Assembly (NCBI GenBank): GCA_038496445.1
Contig: JALMLS010000507.1
Span: 434,001-498,000 of the forward strand
Length of the DNA: 64,000 nt
Reading direction: 5' to 3'
Source: Trichosphaerium sp. ATCC 40318
Lineage: Eukaryota > Protista > Tubulinea
This document shows, in pieces, positions 7,841 through 64,000 of this stretch. The notes beneath the pieces are model-generated. The model was not told where the DNA came from, searched no databases, and saw nothing but the letters and a program-made list of their open reading frames with translations. Numbering within the stretch: position 1 is the first letter of the stretch; each line of letters begins with the position of its first letter. The position numbers and the translations under genes are program-made.

Positions 7841-8728
7841 TCATTGTGTCCAATATAGCTGAGCAACATAAGCAATCACCAATACACATGTAAAAGCAAT
7901 GCCACCAAATATAACATTATGATTATATGCTAATGCACTCCTCCTGTAAACCTCACCACCAACCAACTGACCACCTGGTGTCCAATGTTTGAACCGTCCA
8001 ATTTTTATTCCTTTTTCATACTTCCCAACCACAGCCATATTTCCGCTTCTATACCTTATTTTATAAACCCCATGTAGCATACCTTTGTGATAGAAACAAT
8101 GTTGTTTCATTGCTCCATCACTATGCCATGTTTTATACTCGCCATGTAATTTACTAGTACTAAATATAAACGGAGGTAAAATATTCTTGTACCACTTCTT
8201 TGCTTCATCTGACAGTTTATCACCTACATAGAAACAGTGCAACAATAGGTTTCCATTGGCATGCCATGTTTTCAATTCTCCTCGTTTCTTATCATCACAG
8301 GTTTTAAACTGTTCAGCCAATTGACCATTAACATGCCATACCTTACAGTCAACTTCTTCTTTATCATTAATTCGAAATTGCTTTTTAACTTGTCCATTGT
8401 CATACCAACTTGTTGCGTGGTCACTAAGTATACCACCAACATAGAAGCATTCCTCTTGTAAAGTACCATCATTATGCCATTTCTTGTATTCTCCGTCTAG
8501 CACGCCACCTTTGAAATAGCAACGAGTGGCTACTTTATCGTTTTCGTGTTGTATCCAAACGCCATGTTTTTTGCACTTATCATCGAAACGGGTGCTTACA
8601 GCAGTTGTTTTACACAATAATGGCCATAATGCGTACATTTCGGGAGTATATTCCATGATATCAAGCTGTAGCTCTACGGGAAGGCAAAGCAACTTACATG
8701 GTACACTTCCGTTAGATAAATTTGCCAT
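7841..8728 (-). CDS. F-box-like + MORN-variant (MORN_2/YwqK-like) repeat protein, intronless, with hydrophobic C-terminus
   Basis: LLCLPVELQLDIMEY (F-box-like); repeated G(E/V)YKxWHxNGxLxxxCFYxxGxL units. Confidence 0.8.
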   Translation of the reverse strand: MANLSNGSVPCKLLCLPVELQLDIMEYTPEMYALWPLLCKTTAVSTRFDDKCKKHGVWIQHENDKVATRCYFKGGVLDGEYKKWHNDGTLQEECFYVGGILSDHATSWYDNGQVKKQFRINDKEEVDCKVWHVNGQLAEQFKTCDDKKRGELKTWHANGNLLLHCFYVGDKLSDEAKKWYKNILPPFIFSTSKLHGEYKTWHSDGAMKQHCFYHKGMLHGVYKIRYRSGNMAVVGKYEKGIKIGRFKHWTPGGQLVGGEVYRRSALAYNHNVIFGGIAFTCVLVIAYVAQLYWTQ

Positions 8729-20680: not shown

Positions 20681-21105
20681 TACAATACAATAATAACTCG
20701 TACTTTCTTTGACGTTGGCTGTACATTGTAATGTCTCATAGGTTTTTCTAAGCAACATTGTATTCAAGCAACCTCAGTTTAAGTAACTGAATCACAAACA
20801 GGACCGCAAGTTTGCTTATCCCACGTGATAATCACTTTTATTGACTGTTTCCGTTTCTAGTCTTCTCCACCACTTTCATTTGTGGTGATTAAGACTATGT
20901 ACACAAACAAACCCTGTAGAGGTAGGTTTATACTTTTCTTCTCCAGTGTTGAACAAAATTTATCTTGAACCTTTTTTGCCTTGTGTCCTGTTGCGTCATT
21001 GACACGGAGTGTTTGTGTACCGTTTTTTAGGAGTTGAGAGAAAGAAACGACTTCCACACTAGACAAGTAGCATATCTTCCTTTCATATCATCATTTCATC
21101 CAACA

Positions 21106-22149
21106 ATGCTAACAAACTGTATTAACGAAGTATCTAGTAATAGCGATATCAACGCTGAGCTATTAGACATACCAAACGAGATACTCGCTCACTTATTCAA
21201 ATGCTTGCGGCGCTATGATCGATTTTCTGTTTCCCAAAGCTGCAACCGACTATATGAAGTTATACATAATCACGTGGGATACAAGAGAATTAATATACCC
21301 GCATATGAAGCAACTTCTCATTGTTCACGTCTTTGTGGCAGTCCATTATTAAAAAATACAAATATAAGCGTCCAGTCACCTTCAGACTCAGATCTTAGTA
21401 TGCTTTCAGGTGTCCTACACCTTACACTTAAGTTTAGAACCAAGAGTATCTTGCTAACAGATGACGGATTGAAGTCTATTTGTGGTGTACATCACTTATC
21501 ATTAAAGAACTGTCACAGTATCACAGACACAGGATTAATGCCGCTAGTGGCACACCTCCAGTCCATCCACTTGTATGGAGTTCCAAATCTGACCTCAGAA
21601 CTTATCAAAACATTTGCTGGGATACCACATATCAGTATACCAAACTCTTCAGCTACCGATGAGGTTTTGGTTGCTTTATCAGGAGTAATTTCATTAGATA
21701 TACAAAAATGTGAGCTCATTACAGATGCAGGTGTTTCAGCTTTAGCTGGCGTTCATACCATAAATTTAAGTGGTACAAAAGTGACTGATAAAGGTGTTTC
21801 AGCTTTGGCTGGTGTACACTCTATCAGTCTTTATGATTGTAAAAGTATCACTGGAGAGTGCATGAACAGCCTTGCGGGTGTACACCACATCAACTTGTCA
21901 AGCACAAATGCAACAGATGATTGGATAAAACCTTTGTCTGGTGTGCACACTATCAATCTTTATGGTTGTAAAGGTATCACAATAGAGAGTATGAAACATC
22001 TTTCAAGTGCACACAGTATCGATTTATCGGAGACAAATGTAACAAATGATTGGATTAAATATCTCTCCTGCGCAAAGATACTACAATTGCGACGCACAGC
22101 AACGACATATGAGTATCTGAAAACACTAGAAGTAGATTTAGCACTATGA
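21106..22149 (+). CDS. F-box + LRR protein, intronless
   Basis: LLDIPNEILAHLF (F-box) followed by about 10 LRRs of type (I/V)TDxGxxxLAGVHTINLS. Confidence 0.85.
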   Translation: MLTNCINEVSSNSDINAELLDIPNEILAHLFKCLRRYDRFSVSQSCNRLYEVIHNHVGYKRINIPAYEATSHCSRLCGSPLLKNTNISVQSPSDSDLSMLSGVLHLTLKFRTKSILLTDDGLKSICGVHHLSLKNCHSITDTGLMPLVAHLQSIHLYGVPNLTSELIKTFAGIPHISIPNSSATDEVLVALSGVISLDIQKCELITDAGVSALAGVHTINLSGTKVTDKGVSALAGVHSISLYDCKSITGECMNSLAGVHHINLSSTNATDDWIKPLSGVHTINLYGCKGITIESMKHLSSAHSIDLSETNVTNDWIKYLSCAKILQLRRTATTYEYLKTLEVDLAL

Positions 22150-28078: not shown

Positions 28079-28715
28079 ATGGAAGAGGAAACACCTGTGA
28101 ATCCAGTATACGCCGCAGTACCTTATGGAGTAACAACAGAGAACGTCTTAGATGCGTTTGGAGCTTTAAAGACAGTAATATTAGACGAGTTTGGATTAGA
28201 AGATCAAATCGTTACTATTAAACCAAGGACTGCTGAAGATGCTAAAAATCTTCTATCAATGGGCACTGCAAAGTTTTTTGATACAGAAATTACGTTTTGC
28301 GACAACCTAGAGGCAGCAAAAGCGAAAAAAGGTAAAGCAACAAACAAAAAAAAAACCGTAAATCAAAAACAAAATATGAAAAAAATAGTTTTGAAGTTGT
28401 TTGTCGTTTTGTTGGTTTGTATTTTTTTAAAATGGTAAAAAATACACTCTATCACAAACTCCTGTGTTCCCTTTTGGCCACAGCGGAGGTTAAATCATAA
28501 AATAAACACCGTTGTTTTTTAAAAAGCAGAATTGATTAAAAAATACAAACCATAATATTAGGTGCAATGAAAGGTCCGCAGTTCAAGACGGCGCATCAGA
28601 AGAGGTATGGCGAATACATATCTTTTATTGTGTACACTACACGCTGTTCTAATATAATACCGTTAGTAACAAGAGCGCCTCTTCAATGGGTAACCATCGC
28701 ACGACAACGAAGTAA
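28079..28715 (+). CDS. Small RRM-like protein
   Basis: VYAAVPYGVTTENVLDAFG...TAEDAKNLL fits a degenerate RRM; two short 3' exons; an upstream exon is possible. Confidence 0.45.
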
Positions 28716-36186: not shown

Positions 36187-39100
36187 TCACTTTACATCTT
36201 GTCCTAACTTTGATACATAGTTCTTAATATGCCAAATCAAAGGTGTATTATTAGATGCAACAACATTCCAAAGTATCTGAACATTTGTCTCAACGATATT
36301 AGCAAATTCGTTCAACAAGCAAAACTTGATACAATCCTCTTGAAGTCTTTCTGCGCTGTACTTGTTTGCAAGTTGCCAAAATTGTAAATAGTTATTCTTT
36401 GATATCTCGTTGACAAGGTAATCCTCACAATATTTACCGAGGTCTTCCATATCAAATTTCTCTGCAAGTATCATTACTTCAAGAGCAACATTTGCATTCT
36501 CAAATGTTGTTTTCTTAAGGTATATGAATTCTTTGACTTTAACAAAGTGATCTCTATTGACATCCATAAGTTTCTTTTCTTCTCTAACGGAGCTTATTGT
36601 AGTTTTATCACCTAAATATAATCAAAAAAGTCATGCGAATTTTTAGTTTAAGAGCCCGTTACTGAGAGCTGAAAGTCACAACAAAAAAAAAAGATCAAAA
36701 AACGGTGACAAAATTGAAAAAAAACTCTTGTGGTCGTACCCAGAAACATATCGTCAAAGTGATCTACATCGCAGATAATATATTTATGAGCATATACGGG
36801 ATCACCTGATTCAAATGTAAAGATAATATCAGAAAACTTCTCATCTTGAAAAAGTTCAGCAATATCATCTTTTTCTTCTGTCTTCACTTCTGTCTTCTTC
36901 CATAGAGATACGTTCGAAAACATTGATAATGTCTTAGACATGGAAACAGATGTTTGTTTAATCATCTCCATATTTCCTTCAAGTACACTAACGCGCCTAA
37001 AAAAAGATAAGAACCAACGAACAAAAAAACAACAAAAAAACAAATTTCATTTGGAAGCAAACTATTTTTCCTGTCTTCTTCATTCGTACTTTTCGGCGTT
37101 GTGGTACGCTGTTACTACCCTAACAATAGCTTTTGAAGAATCAATAGCATAATCCTTCTTAGATTCGTTTGCGTTCTGTTTAGGATCATCATTATGAGCT
37201 GCATATATTACAGTAAATAGAGCTGATACAACAGGCTGTAGGTGTTTTTGTAGGTGTACTAGAAGAATAAATAAGTATCAATTACCTGAACGAGCAGTAA
37301 CAAAACATTGATTTGTTCTTACTTTTATGTATTGGATAAGTGAGTTCGATGGCACAATGGAAACCAACGTTATTTTCTTTGTAAGATAGGCAAGGAACCA
37401 AAAAAGGTGTAACAGCAGCCAAGACTTTACCAGACGCAGCGCTTAGTTTTTTATGCTTAGCATTACGTAAGGTAGGAAGATTACCAGATAAAATTATCGG
37501 AAGAACAAGACCAGACAGAGAAGTACCTAATAAAGAAAAGTTGATGAGATTTTGTTAAAGATGCGTGACGCACTTGTTGCTAACATCATTGCGATTGCTG
37601 TTGCTGCAGGATTAGCAATACCTTCATCCTCTTTGTTGGTAAGAAAAAAGAGAGCTTCCAGAATACCCATATGCACAAAGAAAGGAATATTTGATTCTGG
37701 GAGGCACATGCATTCAACTAATACACAAAGGTTGTTAATAGCATGCATACTTGTAATTTCACCACTCATTACACTCTTGAATAGTACAGATATCATTGGA
37801 ACTAAACAAACAAGACATTAACATACGTAGTAACTAATAATAAACGTACGTGCACCTGCACTGACAATTGCTTCACGACAAGAATCTAAATAAAAGTATT
37901 AATACCTCTTCAAAACACGTGAAAGATTTCGAGGTTTTTTAATTATCACGCGATAAGCTATTTTTTTTGGTTTTTGTTTTACTTACTGTGTTTCATTGCC
38001 ATAAGGGCAATACCAGTTGTTGCTAGCATCAAACAAGCTTGATGCGTTTTATTCAGGTTTTTAACATATCTCATTATCACTTCTTTCTGGTTACTGATTT
38101 CGCGCTCGTAGCCTTTCCAAAAAAGGATGTATCAGTACCAACGATTGTTAAGCAAATTGGTCTAAGTGCAAGTAGCATTTACGTACGACTGATTTGAAGA
38201 AATCTATTCAAGCAACGCATGACACCTGCTTCTAGCATAGCGTCATCAACTGACCGTGAAAACATCTTCAACAAGCATGGTAGTATTTGCAAGTCATATA
38301 CACGAGTAACTACAGCATCTACAAATACTTATAAGACAAGGAAACTCGAGGAAAACATGGCCTTGGAAAGTTTGACAAAAAACCAACAACTTGCTGTCTC
38401 ACTCCATTGACACGTGTCATTGTCTTTGTTCATCAATATACGATAAAACAGAGCAAGGATACAAACTTTTGGATATGAAGAAAAAAAACGTACCATCTTG
38501 TAACGCATATCCAAGAACGTGGGTTGCCACTTTAAGCAATTCAGTGCTTTCACCATTGATAATCATTTCTGTTATCTTATCAACAACACCTTGCTCTATT
38601 AACACCTGTCTACCGATTTCTAAAAGAAGAAATAAAAGTTAAAAAAGAGCAATCTTTTTAAAGCAATTACTGTACCTGTTTTGGCTAAGTTAGCCAAAAT
38701 ATGCAACACGAGTATTTTAGCGCTTAGTGTTACGGAAGAACGAGTCGTTTGAAGGAAATCAAGTAAATGAGGAACAAGACTGTTGCATTCTACTAGATAC
38801 TTCACTAGGCAGTGTGTTAATAGTGCTATACGCGTAATACAGCGATTTAAAGCAATATTAATGACTTGGAAGAGAAAAACAATTGTGTAACGTCATACCA
38901 AGTTTAGGGGTTTCTGAAAATTGTTTAAGTGTTATCAATGACGTTTTAACGATCTGTGTGTTCTCGTGTTGAAGTAGAGAAACAAGAAGATTAACGTATT
39001 TGAGAGAAAATACAATCTGCTGAATACCAGCGTCTTTAGCAGTAATTGTCAGTAAAATACCCAAAGCTTGGAGTACATGATCTCTACGAAAACAGAAATT

Positions 39101-39372
39101 AGGTCTTTTTCTTAGGAACTGTACAATGAGTTCTCTACGCACGCATCGCTCGAATAGACGCAATTCACCAATGGTGTCAGTAATTCGACACTAAAAGACT
39201 ATCAATTAATTGATTGTATGCTTTACACGCACTCTTCGAATATATCTGATAGACTGGTGTTAATGTCTGTATCAGATAACTTTGCTAGCACTTCTATTGC
39301 CTCTGCTGCAGTATCTGGGTTACCAAGCTTTTCAGCAAGCTCTGGTACAGTGTTTTTGTACTCTACAGCCAT
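36187..39372 (-). CDS. ARM-repeat + BTB/BACK protein
   Basis: ARM-like helical exons; FSDIIFTFESGDPVYAHKYII (BTB); LAEKFDMEDLGKYCEDYL, LANKYSAERLQEDC (BACK). Start uncertain. Confidence 0.8.
38362..38462. repeat. 101-bp exact inverted copy of 39689-39789, located in an intron
   Basis: Base-by-base identical reverse complement; lies in the 175-nt intron 38319-38493 of the ARM-BTB gene. Confidence 0.95.
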
Positions 39373-39621
39373 GTACTTGCGCTCCAAACCCTTTTCTAGC
39401 GGCTTTAAGGTACAGGCCAAAACAATGTTAAGCCAACTTTCTGGACGAACTTTCCTAGTCCTTGGCCAACTCAGGTTTACGCATAAATATACTCCTATTC
39501 TTGAGACAATACATTACCCTTTTTTTAAAAGGAAAGATTAGAAAATCACAATTTTTTGAGAAACTCACTTTGTTTGTGTACAAAACCTAGGAAAACCCAA
39601 CAGGTTAGAAAAAAATACGCC

Positions 39622-41418
39622 ATGGAAGGTGTTGATGTATCGTCATGGAATATAATTAACAAAAGCTCTATTACTCCAGTCCAAAAGCGTATCCTTGCTC
39701 TGTTTTATCGTATATTGATGAACAAAGACAATGACACGTGTCAATGGAGTGAGACAGCAAGTTGTTGGTTTTTTGTCAAACTTTCCAAGCTTCACAACCA
39801 ACTCTGTGAAGAGCTTGACGCAAAATATGATAGCGTAGAAAAGTTAAAGCGAATCCTGCATCAACTAGGTTTTGTTAACTCGAGCGGTTATTGGGCATTC
39901 GCCTACAAAGATATACAAACAGGACTACCAATATTCAGAAAGGAAAACAGACGTTTTCAAAGTACACTTGCTCCATTTAACGCAACAAACTAAATACTTC
40001 TTTAGACTTTCTTAATGCACCTTCTTCTTTGTTAAGAACCCATGACGGAATACTTCCCCCACTTTTAGGTATTCAAAATGGCACGTCGCAAAATCTTCGG
40101 CATACTGTGCCATTTTATGGGAACACCCAACGAGACCCAAAACATCACTTAAAAAATGATATGGTGAGCCACTGACCAAAAAACAAAAAAGATATAGACT
40201 CACATTGTACTGCATAGGTACCTAAATATCACCATGTTTCTCCCATAAGGTCACCCAACATTGGCCGCGCATTATTTTCCAGAAACCCCCATGGGGCATC
40301 TGCTTTTTCAGGTACGTTTGAGAAAAAAATACAAAAGTAAAAAAAAACCCAAGTGCTTAGTACTAACACGGTTAGGCGTACCGAAGAATACCTCAAAAAC
40401 ACAAGGCGGAGTGCAAACGAACGAGGAAGAAAAGAAGAAGAACGCACATGATACATTGTTACCTCCAGTCGCAGCTATTGTCCTTCAACATAACCTAGAA
40501 GAACCAGTACTGCATTCCTCTTTGTGAATATTCCACCTAAAAAGATTTAGGTTACTACACTCAATGAAGTATACCAGCATATTTCCTACTTTACAAAGCG
40601 TCCTCTTAACAGTTTTGAGAGCAAGTTAGTACGCTTCACTGTTGGTATATTTATTTTTGGCGACGGCATTCTTGAACGTGAAAATTTCGCTAAGGTAAAA
40701 AAAACTACCCAACAGGATTGTGTACAGTACATGAGTTATTAATTTCTCAGCTTACAGATACCTACCCGATAAATTTAAAAGTACTAGATGAATTATGGAA
40801 GTACTTTGGACCGTGGGACCACCTCCTTTACAAAATACAAGAACTACCATTCAAGGTTTCAATTATTCACTAAAACATGGTTTTATGCTAAACAATCATG
40901 AATCTGAATAATTTTTTTAGACGTTTTATCACGGGAAAATTAGTTGCATAGAAGCTACAAGGCGTATTAAAGGTAAAAGAAAATTCCTTTTTCGCGTTTT
41001 TGAAAAAAACGGTTTATTAGTTCGACACACATTTGACATTATTCTTTCTTACTGTTATACAAAAGGGCAACCTCGTGGTACCTTCTTAATAGTAAACTCT
41101 GACATACCTGGAGTTTTTTCTCTATTGTGTAGTAGAGATCACCAAGGAAGCCATGAAATAGTTGAATTTTCTATTTATAACTGTCGTATTGGTGTAAGAT
41201 GCCAAGAGCGTCATTATGATAATCTAGTAGATTTAATAGAGAGTAACAACCACCTATGGAAGCGTGGATGTAATGGTGGTATATTTAAGAGGCTAATAAT
41301 GCAAAACAAAGAAGAATTTCCTTGGAGTCAAGAAGATCCGAATTATAAACTTTATATTAAAACCACGTTTCGAGAAACGGCATCTTGGCCTTCTTATCCT
41401 GAACCTCCATGTCGGTAA
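39622..41418 (+). CDS. HSF-like DNA-binding domain + low-complexity linker + EF/SH2-like module
   Basis: Eight exons join in frame at GT-AG sites. N-term LFYRILMNKDNDTCQWSET..LKRILHQLGF..YWAFAY; C-term YFGPW..FYHGKISCIEA..GTFLIVNS..YDNLVDLI. Confidence 0.7.
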
Positions 41419-49420: not shown

Positions 49421-49886
49421 ATATATCACTAGTCACTCACATCAAACAATCTGTAGTTGTTTGTTGTTTAGAGTGTCTTATGAGCAATGATTGATCATTA
49501 TCCTCGCTTCTATTCAAGATCTTCTAGGACAATCATCGTGTATCAAACATAATCATCTGAGTTAGACTGCAAGCAGTTTTTTTTTTCAGTCCACTATCAA
49601 TTTCACTATTGATCGTACAAGTCCGTTGACTATTTCTCATTCTACTGCTACTCATTCCAAGGGTTACCTCAGTTATTCTTTGTATTTTTTATTAAAAACA
49701 ACCTCTAAAAAGTGATTCTGTACAGAAACAGTAAAAGGTTAGAGGAGTAAGTTTAATAATTACGATAGTTAAGTGTTGCTAAACGGTTGAAGTTAAGTCG
49801 AGTCGTATTTTGGTTATTGATCGGTATCAGAAGTAACTGCTTCGCCACAAATCTCTTAGGCCTTACTATCGTCATAGAAGCCAACC

Positions 49887-50976
49887 ATGCAAGCGAAATG
49901 TCTTAGAAAAGATTACATTCATGACGATATCAACACTGAGCTTTTAGACATACCAACAGAGATACAGGCTCATTTGCTCAAGTTTTGTAAGCGTTCTGAT
50001 AGATTTTCTGTTTCCCAGAGCTGCAAACGGCTGAGTGATGTTATACGGCATCATGTCGGTTTTGTGGGAATTTCATTTCTAAGCAGAGAAAGTTGTTCAT
50101 GTCTTTGTGGCAGTCCACTATAAAAAATACGAGAATATCGGTTTACGACCCAACAGACTCAGATCTTAGTTTCCTTTCAGGTGTTCAACACCTTTCACTG
50201 TGTCACAGTGTCAGCTTGCACACACACCACGGATACAAGGGTACCTCGCTAACAGATGACGGATTGAAGTCTATTTGTGGTGTACGTCATTTGTCATTAG
50301 TGAATTGTTGCAAAAATATCACCGATGCAGGATTTAAGCCACTTTTGAGACACCTCAAGTATATTGAATTGTTTGGAACCACAAGCCTGACCACGGAGGG
50401 TATGAAAGCATTTGCTGGTATACCAAGCATCGGCTTACCAATGTCCTCAATTACAGATGAGGTTTTGGTAGCGTTATCAGGAGTACATACCATAGATATA
50501 CAAAAATGTAAGCTCATTACAGATGAAGGTGTTTCAGCTTTGGCTGGCGTTCATACCATAAATTTAAGTGGTACAAAAGTGACTGACAAAGGTGTTTTGT
50601 CGTTGGTTGGTGTACACAATATCAAGCTTTGTGGGTGTAAACATATCACTGGAGAGTCTATGAAATACCTGGCAGGTGTACACTCCATCAACTTGTCACG
50701 CACAAATGCAACAGATGATTGGATAAAACCTCTGTCTGGTGTGCACAGTATCAGCCTTCAATCGTGTAACGGTATCACAATAGAAAGTATGAAATACCTT
50801 TCAAGAGTGTACTATATTGATGAAGCACACACAAATGCAACTGATGCATGGCTCATCTTACTAATTTAATTGAATTAAATTATAGATCTAATTTTTTTGA
50901 CAGAATTAATGGAATTACAGATGACAAGATTAAAGCGCTAAAAATGAAAGGCGTTTCAGTTATCAGCTATCGATAG
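49887..50976 (+). pseudogene. F-box + LRR paralogue of 21106-22149 with two frameshifts
   Basis: Long near-identical stretches shared with the first copy; 1-nt deletion near 50121 (cca cta taa vs cca tta tta aaa); second shift near 50850 before an LRR-like ending (..ITDDKIKALKMKGV). Confidence 0.75.
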
Positions 50977-63000: not shown

Positions 63001-64000
63001 TGCCAAGTATGGCTTTCTGCGATGAATGCTTATTTATTTGTGTAGACGTGTTCAAAAGAGTACTAACAAGGAAGTACTGATGGCTATTCGTCATAAGAGT
63101 AAATTACCTAATATTATCCTTGAATGGCGTAAATTGAGTCATACTATTAATACATACATTGATTCTTTACCTAAATTTGCTTTCCCTCGCAGAGTAAGAA
63201 ACAACTCTTTTTTACTTTTTCTGAAACCAACTGTTTTTTTAACGTTGTTAGTCCATGCAAATGAAGAGAGTTTATTCTACGTGTTTACAAACTGCATGTC
63301 CTACTGGAAGACTAGCTTTTACAGATCCTAATCTCCAGGCACGTGTTATATTATTGAAGATTTCTTGTTGACATTCTTTAGTCAATTACTCATTCGTTTG
63401 ATTTTGTACCTGTTAAAGGAACAAAAACATCTCAATATTCATCATCTTCAAAGTCTCCTGATATGTTTCATTCACCAACAAATTCATCATCTCCTACATC
63501 TCCAGCGTTAACACCTCTGGGACCAGTGATAAGGATAAACATTCGTGATTCTTTTTGTAGCCAAAAGGTATTTTTTCTCTTTTTTCGCTTTTCTGAATCT
63601 TAAACTCAATGTCTCTGCGTGTTACGTTATTCTCATATTTTTACTAGGGTTTCCAACTTATATCCGCTGATTATTCACAGTTAGAATTTCGTATATTAGC
63701 TCACTATGCACAGTACGTAGATTGTTTTTTTAGGCTTTTTTTTCTTGTTTTGTGTAATGCAATACGTGTTAACTGGAGTACCAGAGATGAAAAATTGAAT
63801 AGTACTTTTCATACCAAGGATGACATTTTTAAGAACGTAGCCAGTATTTGGCTTAATAAAAACCCAAACACAATAACAAAGGTAACCGAAACAAAAAGCT
63901 TGAAATTTCCATACTTCTCCTTAACCAATCTTCTAAGGAGGAGCGTTCTCATTGTAAGCATATTGTATATGGTATCCTTTATGGCATGGGTATTGGTAAA
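60088..64000 (+). CDS. Family A DNA polymerase (Pol theta/nu-like, no helicase), truncated by the window end
   Basis: DPKIAAWMID, EMPILEILSRME..GI, ILEWRKL, TGRLAFTDPNLQ, motif A ADYSQLEFRILAH, motif B RSHCKHIVYGILYGMG; GC donor at 63339. Confidence 0.9.

Follow-up and report, generated by a model that had tools for sequence, protein, structure and literature searches.

An exact 101-nt inverted copy of a neighbouring gene's coding segment in a Trichosphaerium intron: a probable microhomology-assisted templated insertion

Templated insertions of the MMB-TI type have a characteristic signature: a nearby template in inverted orientation and microhomology that is frequently interrupted, with pairing not required even of the 3'-most base (PMC8421209). 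The usual MMB-TI and polymerase-theta events measure tens of nucleotides and operate in a range of about 100 bp; for yeast, work cited in PMC8421209 places the templates of such insertions within ~100 bp. A second kind of inverted junction arises in vitro. Among MDA chimeras, 85% are inverted, mostly joining sequences <10 kb apart; of these, 93.5% show 2-21 nt of complementarity at the junction (PMC1855051). An intron of an ARM/BTB gene in Trichosphaerium sp. carries a copy that resembles MMB-TI and polymerase-theta insertions, the junction microhomology of which may be interrupted ('microhomeology'), in its nearby inverted template and its position outside coding sequence, where such insertions are tolerated (PMC8421209, PMC7165422). 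It differs from them in size and distance (101-112 nt, 1.2 kb), in having one blunt junction and in the nature of its template, an exon of the neighbouring gene. On the best reading, it is probably a templated insertion of the MMBIR/TMEJ type.

The published draft genome of Trichosphaerium sp. comprises 70.87 Mb in 710 scaffolds, with 37.7% GC (PMC10521059). The statistics of the assembly examined (70.28 Mb in 642 contigs, with 34-41% GC in the DNA analysed) are in keeping with that draft. The copy lies in a 64-kb window (the whole stretch of DNA that was analysed), the features of which are listed in Table 1.

Table 1. Features of the ARM/BTB gene, its divergent neighbour and the 101-nt inverted pair
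Feature	Coordinates	Strand	Basis or comment
ARM/BTB host gene (many short introns; ATG at 39372)	36187..39372	-	Pfam BTB, weak Arm/HEAT
Host intron (175 nt, GTACGT..TTTGTAG, phase 1)	38319..38493	-	Frame-consistent junction QD|D|AVV
Inserted copy (101 nt, intron 4 of ARM/BTB gene)	38362..38462	-	100% reverse complement of 39689-39789
Intron-copy flank: TCCAAAAG (38473-38466) then TTT (38465-38463)	38463..38473	-	Read from sequence
Spacer separating the start codons of the divergent genes (249 nt; presumed shared promoter)	39373..39621		Non-coding codon score
Source gene (N-terminal orphan domain that may be a winged helix; SH2-looking exon downstream, without a Pfam hit)	39622..41418	+	ORFs, frames
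Source-copy flank: TCCAAAAG (39680-39687) then C (39688)	39680..39688	+	Read from sequence
Source copy (first ORF of the orphan neighbour, from codon 23, positions 2-3, through codon 56)	39689..39789	+	In frame

The two copies are exact reverse complements (101/101 nt identical by the repeat finder) and are separated by 1226 nt. This bears out the perfect 101-bp reverse-complement copy reported in an earlier sequence-only reading of this DNA. The pair is the sole long exact repeat in the window, and a search of the whole assembly (70.28 Mb in 642 contigs) returned just two copies of the sequence, both in the window. No second haplotype contig for the locus was found in the genome-wide search of the 70.3-Mb assembly, and a scan of 264 kb found no second case of such a local copy. 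Both copies start with GTATCCTT (39689-39696 and 38462-38455), end in CCAAG and are sense-oriented in their respective genes, all as the sequence-only reading had described. The shared sense orientation is an automatic consequence of inverting a copy between two divergently transcribed genes.

Introner-like or mobile-intron elements and MITEs are also short intronic sequences with a copy elsewhere. Unlike these elements, the sequence occurs just twice in 70 Mb, and neither terminal inverted repeats nor a target-site duplication were found at the copy or its flanks. It is therefore not a mobile element, and its identification as an introner or MITE was rejected. A true MITE-like element of 96 nt looks quite different from the 101-nt copy.

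The host gene matches the Pfam BTB profile in the exon at 36187-36567 (E-value: 5e-5; 23.9 bits, gathering cut-off 20.5), and its exon at 38858-39163 has weak Arm/HEAT matches (Arm repeat E-value: 0.085). Splicing of the host intron is predicted from the sequence to keep the frame, ..LGYALQD being followed by D-AVVTRVY.. in the product. The copy is preceded by 31 nt of intron and followed by 43 nt, and the intron minus the 101 nt measures 74 nt (63 nt if the flanking 8-mer discussed below is counted as copied). Other measured introns of the ARM/BTB gene are ~48-100 nt long, and the mean intron length in the draft genome is 75.4 nt (PMC10521059). The earlier description of a 175-nt intron that is normal once the copy is removed thus holds. 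The T content of the intron flanks is 49%, versus 35% for the insert.

The first ORF of the source gene (39622-39990, 123 aa) contains the segment in frame and has a codon bias at the 99th percentile. If the segment is taken out, the ATG, the sole start codon of this ORF, no longer shares a frame with the remainder. The codon-usage log-ratio of the segment is +0.12 in the frame of the ORF, versus -0.18 and -0.21 in the two other frames. The direction of copying was from exon to intron: the source ORF keeps its frame only with the segment, codon bias within the segment follows that frame, and the host intron would otherwise be a normal 74 nt.

The N-terminal domain of the source gene is an orphan. 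Homology searches were performed with single exons rather than the joined spliced protein. There was no Pfam match to the domain at E<=0.1 and no paralogue in the 70.3-Mb genome. For the 123-aa ORF, a word search gave no match, and a full-library search gave four, all of them spurious matches to repetitive proteins. A sequence search of the PDB found nothing significant (an SH2 look-alike stretch of SHIP2 had an E-value of 0.8) and no HSF. The single-sequence AlphaFold model of the domain has a pLDDT of 49; Foldseek with this low-confidence model returned assorted winged-helix proteins, all non-significant with E-values above 0.07, and again no HSF. The 'HSF-like' label that the domain had been given is therefore not supported, there being no Pfam HSF_DNA-bind match and no HSF among the PDB or Foldseek matches. 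In the low-confidence model, the segment forms the first helix and hairpin within one compact domain.

As the domain is without a homologue anywhere searched, conservation cannot prove its age, and this favours a reversed direction of copying, in which the segment would be native to the ARM/BTB intron and would have made part of the neighbour's ORF. Such a reversal is scarcely credible. The only start codon of the neighbour falls out of frame without the segment, the positive in-frame codon bias of the segment resembles that of the rest of the ORF, and its base composition is unlike that of the intron flanks. The helix and hairpin of the predicted compact domain also argue against reversal, as does the host intron, which is 100 nt above the usual length solely through the segment.

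The two junctions of the copy are dissimilar. At the right junction, which is blunt, there is no microhomology or complementarity (0 nt). At the left junction, the 8-nt match TCCAAAAG lies 3 nt away and is interrupted: TTT, which directly abuts the copy, stands in the intron where the coding sequence has C. The computed chance of an 8-nt near-junction match is ~0.002. Direct reading of the sequence confirmed the claim that this 8-mer precedes both copies with a TTT versus C difference. BLAST joins the 8-mer flank to the 101 nt in one alignment of 112 columns (97%) that spans the TTT/C break. The claim that the copy is 'bounded precisely by GT' consequently stands if the 8-mer is pre-existing homology and fails if the 8-mer is part of a 112-nt copy at 97%, since the GT boundary then vanishes. 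Priming steps at the TTT/C junction were considered on either strand and set aside, as no simple scheme yields TTT in place of C. Self-complementarity of 8 nt between the left junction and the 3' end of the segment likewise gave no consistent model.

A blunt right junction and TTT directly against the copy are what would be expected had a free double-stranded fragment of the neighbouring exon, released by repair or replication, been captured at an intron break by classical end joining, and the genome has Ku70/80-like genes. The 8-nt near-junction match (chance ~0.002) is left unexplained by such a capture, as is the choice of the nearest neighbour as donor, and it is unlikely that a fragment was taken up in this way, with no synthesis primed at the insertion site.

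The ends of the segment are GT..AG, which has a computed chance of ~0.34% (0.0034). This low chance favours a route through RNA, in which the 101 nt would have been excised from the neighbour's transcript as a cryptic U12-like intron and then put back into DNA, in the ARM/BTB gene, through reverse splicing or a cDNA, giving an intron within an intron. Like U12-type introns, the segment has the consensus donor GTATCCTT and an AG end, and the U12-donor-like start that had been claimed for it was upheld, since the octamer is an exact fit to the 5' splice site RTATCCTT at both copies. The genome has a minor spliceosome; it has a U12 snRNA candidate in which the branch-site-binding box is intact, and it has canonical U12 introns in which TCCTTAAC stands 6-16 nt upstream of the AG (13 pattern matches, the box being required by construction, versus 0 in the control). 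However, unlike U12-type introns, the segment has no TCCTTAAC-like branch box, including in its last 40 nt, is in-frame coding sequence with the corresponding codon bias, and has a length that is not a multiple of three. Excision of 101 nt would shift the frame and lead to a stop after six further codons. In addition, the homology runs 8 nt past the GT, outside the supposed intron, and the route needs reverse transcription and recombination while leaving unexplained a target 1.2 kb off on the same DNA. As the branch box is missing, the segment was rejected as a U12 intron. The re-inserted cryptic intron offered by the sequence-only reading is thus extremely unlikely, given the missing box, the broken frame and a GT boundary that is lost if the 8-mer belongs to the copy. 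It is also very unlikely that the amoeba has a pathway that copies GT..AG-bounded pieces (true introns, or parts of exons whose ends resemble those of introns) into neighbouring genes through RNA or cDNA.

The draft genome was produced from REPLI-g-amplified nuclei by Canu assembly of ONT and PacBio reads, followed by three rounds of Pilon (PMC10521059). The DNA behind the assembly was therefore probably MDA-amplified, which makes an in-vitro chimera a serious rival: phi29 would have switched template twice during MDA, the chimera would have entered the Canu/Pilon consensus and the genome of the organism would have no insertion. This is possible, though not probable. Like the inverted chimeras of phi29, the copy is inverted, lies <10 kb from its template and is joined near a short complementary stretch; MDA produces inverted chimeras between nearby sequences at microhomologies (PMC1855051), and 100% identity is as expected from a chimera. 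The described chimeras, however, are single junctions in single reads, whereas here there are two junctions at one site in an assembly consensus, so that two switches returning to that site would be required. The unpaired TTT ought to have been removed by the proofreading of phi29, and the other junction has no complementarity. The nuclei came from five dishes, and a lone chimera would be expected to be in the minority and outvoted in the consensus. The scan of 264 kb, which gave no further such copy, and the MDA origin of the DNA, which is itself presumed, also count against an artefact.

The reading preferred here, on the sequence evidence, is that the 101-nt copy is probably a microhomology-assisted templated insertion, arising from a template switch as DNA was replicated or a break repaired. 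This was one of two origins put forward in the sequence-only reading. Its microhomology-templated part agrees with an inverted copy that lies 1.2 kb from its template and beside an interrupted 8-nt match; its attribution to Pol theta is conjectural. Three points are contrary to a templated insertion. The event exceeds typical polymerase-theta or MMBIR insertions in both size (101 nt) and distance from the template (1.2 kb), one junction is blunt while no simple priming scheme explains the other, and the GT..AG ends (~0.34%) must count as coincidence.

A possible course of events, in which the break, the enzyme and the sequence of steps are all presumed, is as follows. Within intron 4 of the ARM/BTB gene, a 3' end that was broken or stalled may have moved onto the first exon of the divergently oriented gene close by, copied ~101-112 nt as an inverted tract and returned to its original locus, in an event of the MMBIR or polymerase-theta end-joining type. 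The genome encodes several family A polymerases as well as Ku (Ku70/80-like genes), so the needed enzymes are plausible. The extra DNA would leave with the spliced intron and would have no function of its own. The insertion is probably either recent, or older and held identical by gene conversion.

The proposed event would have left the shared promoter flanked by a 101-bp inverted repeat, as the 249-nt spacer, which presumably serves as the promoter of both genes, sits inside the 1226-nt stretch flanked by the pair. An inversion through the pair is possible in principle and would break both genes; there is no sign that it has occurred. The copy itself is most likely an ordinary, functionless scar of error-prone DNA copying. 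It also serves as a warning that small exact inverted copies in this assembly may be amplification artefacts. If real, it is a clean, datable case of local template switching that carried coding sequence into the intron of a neighbour. The resulting inverted repeat could destabilise two genes, and such copies would be raw material for exon shuffling.

The window contains an inverted repeat of 101 nt, found with a repeat finder, whose arms are 100% complementary and 1226 nt apart (see table). One arm lies in the first open reading frame (ORF) of an orphan gene and the other in an intron of the ARM/BTB gene that diverges from it. The sequence-only reading had described an exact copy in the neighbour's intron, and this is borne out across the 70.3-Mb assembly, in which a 301-nt query around the coding copy returned only that copy and the inverted one. 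A perfect match of 101 nt cannot be explained by chance. Besides this pair, and excepting diverged paralogues 28.8 kb apart, no exact repeats of at least 35 nt were found in the 64-kb window.

Each exon was used as a separate query in Pfam and homology searches. The last large exon of the ARM/BTB gene has a BTB match above threshold, and an earlier exon has weak Arm/HEAT matches. The splice junction of the host intron (..LGYALQD + D-AVVTRVY..) is in frame. The copy is preceded by 31 nt and followed by 43 nt of intron sequence, leaving an intron of 74 nt when it is removed; three other measured introns of this gene are about 48-100 nt long. The T content is 49% in the intron flanks versus 35% in the copy.

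Coordinates of the repeat, its genes and other features (G000, whole assembly; C, its contigs, C10 carrying the window; L, other stretches of G000; other positions are those of the window)
Feature	Position	Strand	Remarks
ARM/BTB gene	ATG 39372 to stop 36187	minus	multi-exon, read from sequence
ARM/BTB first intron	39191-39228	minus	apparently just 38 nt, GTGTAA...TTTTAG; sole frame-consistent exon 1-exon 2 join found
Host intron	38493-38319	minus	175 nt, GTACGT start, TTTGTAG end, phase 1
Intron copy	38362-38462	minus	
Source ORF	start 39622	plus	123 open codons; ATG 249 nt from ARM/BTB ATG
Coding copy	39689-39789	plus	codon 23 (positions 2-3) to codon 56
Peptide of copied segment	39685-39792		codons 22-57; by eye against part of SHIP2 SH2 domain, YRIL.N.D..T.Q.SE..S..FF.KL
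Diverged direct paralogous segments	21086-21818, 49867-50616		71-91% identity, 28.8 kb apart, within long ORFs
Family A DNA polymerase exons (Pfam DNA_pol_A)	63026-63328, on to G000:C10:498488		continue past window end
Further family A polymerase loci	C73, C107, C288 (identical copies)		at least five further loci in genome, including these three
TCCTTAAC box	63918-63940	plus	12 nt ahead of AG; probable U12-type intron 3' end, polymerase gene
U12 snRNA candidate	L005:1501-1643 = G000:C49:145161-145303	minus	full-length
Canonical U12-type introns	C3:229851, C5:160244, C22:321161, C34:290966		58-72 nt, exact GTATCCTT and TCCTTAAC boxes
Further such introns	G000 C56:53592, C66:206847, C67:237667, C69:132551		58-72 nt
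Identical U12-intron sequences on large and very small contigs	C22:321161-321223 = C486:4318-4380; C5:160244-160315 = C568:7106-7177		
Exact 96-nt direct pair	L008:1891-1986, 8371-8466 = G000:C10:21891-21986, 28371-28466		
Repeat-rich stretch	G000:C10:170000-190000 (L023-L025)		long tandem arrays; several inverted pairs of 200-970 nt, 90-95% identity

Four lines of evidence say that the coding copy is the original and the intron copy derived. When the segment is deleted from the source ORF, the only ATG is out of frame with the remainder and only six more codons precede a stop. By a codon-usage log-ratio trained on the long ORFs of the window, the whole source ORF scores +0.17 in frame (99th percentile of random windows). 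The segment by itself scores +0.12 in frame, its other two frames giving -0.18 and -0.21; the in-frame scores are similar to what the ARM and BTB exons give. In a low-confidence structure model (pLDDT 49), the segment is predicted to form the first helix and beta hairpin of a small helix-strand-strand-helix-helix unit. Finally, the excess size of the host intron is due to the segment alone. With all four against it, an origin of the segment in the intron and its copying into the source gene is very improbable. Conservation cannot be used as evidence of direction because the source domain is an orphan.

The source domain had been labelled HSF-like, a label that is unsupported: it has no match in Pfam or by word search, no paralogue in the genome and no HSF match in a PDB sequence search, and 1.84 billion cluster representatives yielded only four matches, all repetitive and spurious. 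Foldseek rows are non-significant and mostly winged-helix proteins, at most hinting at such an affinity in the model. The SHIP2 SH2 alignment of the copied peptide is not significant (E-value: 0.8). A downstream exon of the source gene has an SH2-like look and no Pfam match.

The junctions carry two signals. TCCAAAAG stands ahead of each copy, separated from it by TTT in the intron and by C in the exon; 3' of the copy, the two sequences diverge immediately. In simulations on the window, the chance of a shared 8-mer within 5 nt of either junction is about 0.002, and that of a random 101-mer with a GT start and an AG end is about 0.0034. The former suggests a homology-guided DNA process and the latter splicing, so the two point opposite ways. 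Because BLAST unites the 8-mer and the 101 nt in one 112-column alignment (97%), the copy may be about 110 nt long with one copying error; it would then lack the GT start, and the original intron would be 63 nt, also a normal length.

A real templated insertion is the probable origin, and it would be of the MMBIR type (template switching at microhomologies during break repair or replication). The microhomology-templated insertion offered by the sequence-only reading agrees with the published signature, in which the template is near, the insert inverted and the microhomology often interrupted (PMC8421209), although the event here is larger and farther from its template than typical cases. MMBIR-type priming is possible with an unpaired 3'-most base (PMC8421209); no priming scheme giving TTT instead of C was found on either strand. 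The genome has genes for Ku and for several family A polymerases, one at the window's end, so that enzymes for either end-joining route are plausible. Ku would also serve classical end joining of a captured free fragment, an origin that we consider improbable.

A draft genome published for Trichosphaerium sp. (PMC10521059) has 70.87 Mb in 710 scaffolds, 37.7% GC and introns averaging 75.4 nt. The figures of this assembly (70.28 Mb, 642 contigs; window GC 34-41%) fit it, and both presumably come from the same DNA source. For that draft, DNA from nuclei was amplified with the REPLI-g MDA kit (whole-genome amplification with phi29 polymerase), and Nanopore and PacBio reads were assembled with Canu, with three rounds of Pilon polishing and a Redundans reduction (PMC10521059). 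Inverted joins make up 85% of MDA chimeras, and the joined segments mostly lie less than 10 kb from each other; among the inverted ones within this distance, 93.5% have 2-21 nt of complementarity at the join (PMC1855051). This makes an amplification or assembly artefact a rival to be taken seriously, though an unlikely one. It needs two switches with return to the same site, the unpaired TTT should fall to phi29 proofreading, and one junction has zero complementarity. With many input nuclei, a lone chimera should lose the consensus vote, and no second copy of this kind was seen in the 264 kb scanned. The assembly seems to retain some uncollapsed haplotigs or duplicate contigs (see the identical U12-intron sequences in the table).

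The other proposal of the sequence-only reading was that a cryptically spliced piece had been re-inserted, giving an intron within an intron. The genome does possess a minor spliceosome. The U12 snRNA candidate, a divergent RNA of this machinery, scores 39 bits, under the Rfam threshold of 53 bits, but its GUAAGGAAAAU branch-site-binding box is intact and an Sm site is present. The pattern GTATCCTT-gap-TCCTTAAC-6-16 nt-AG has 13 matches in the genome versus none in a reversed control. The 101-nt segment was rejected as a U12 intron because it shares only the donor octamer, has no branch box, is coding and breaks the frame on removal. The RNA route, favoured by the rarity of GT..AG ends, also requires reverse transcription and recombination and leaves the choice of the nearest gene as target unexplained; it is scarcely credible.

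The copies of the 96-nt pair end in inverted repeats (TGTAATG...CATTACA), have unrelated flanks and look like a MITE-like element. The 20-kb repeat-rich stretch stands out from the other DNA in the 264 kb scanned.

A templated insertion would be a familiar type of mutation at a new site. No function is expected of the insert because it is removed with the intron; being sense-oriented, it puts decoy splice dinucleotides, one GT and one AG, into the host intron. Nothing shows an actual inversion between the arms. Their recombination would invert 1.2 kb, comprising the presumed promoter, ARM/BTB exons 1-4 and codons 1-22 of the neighbour, and would disrupt both genes. The inverted repeat is a liability, not a switch.
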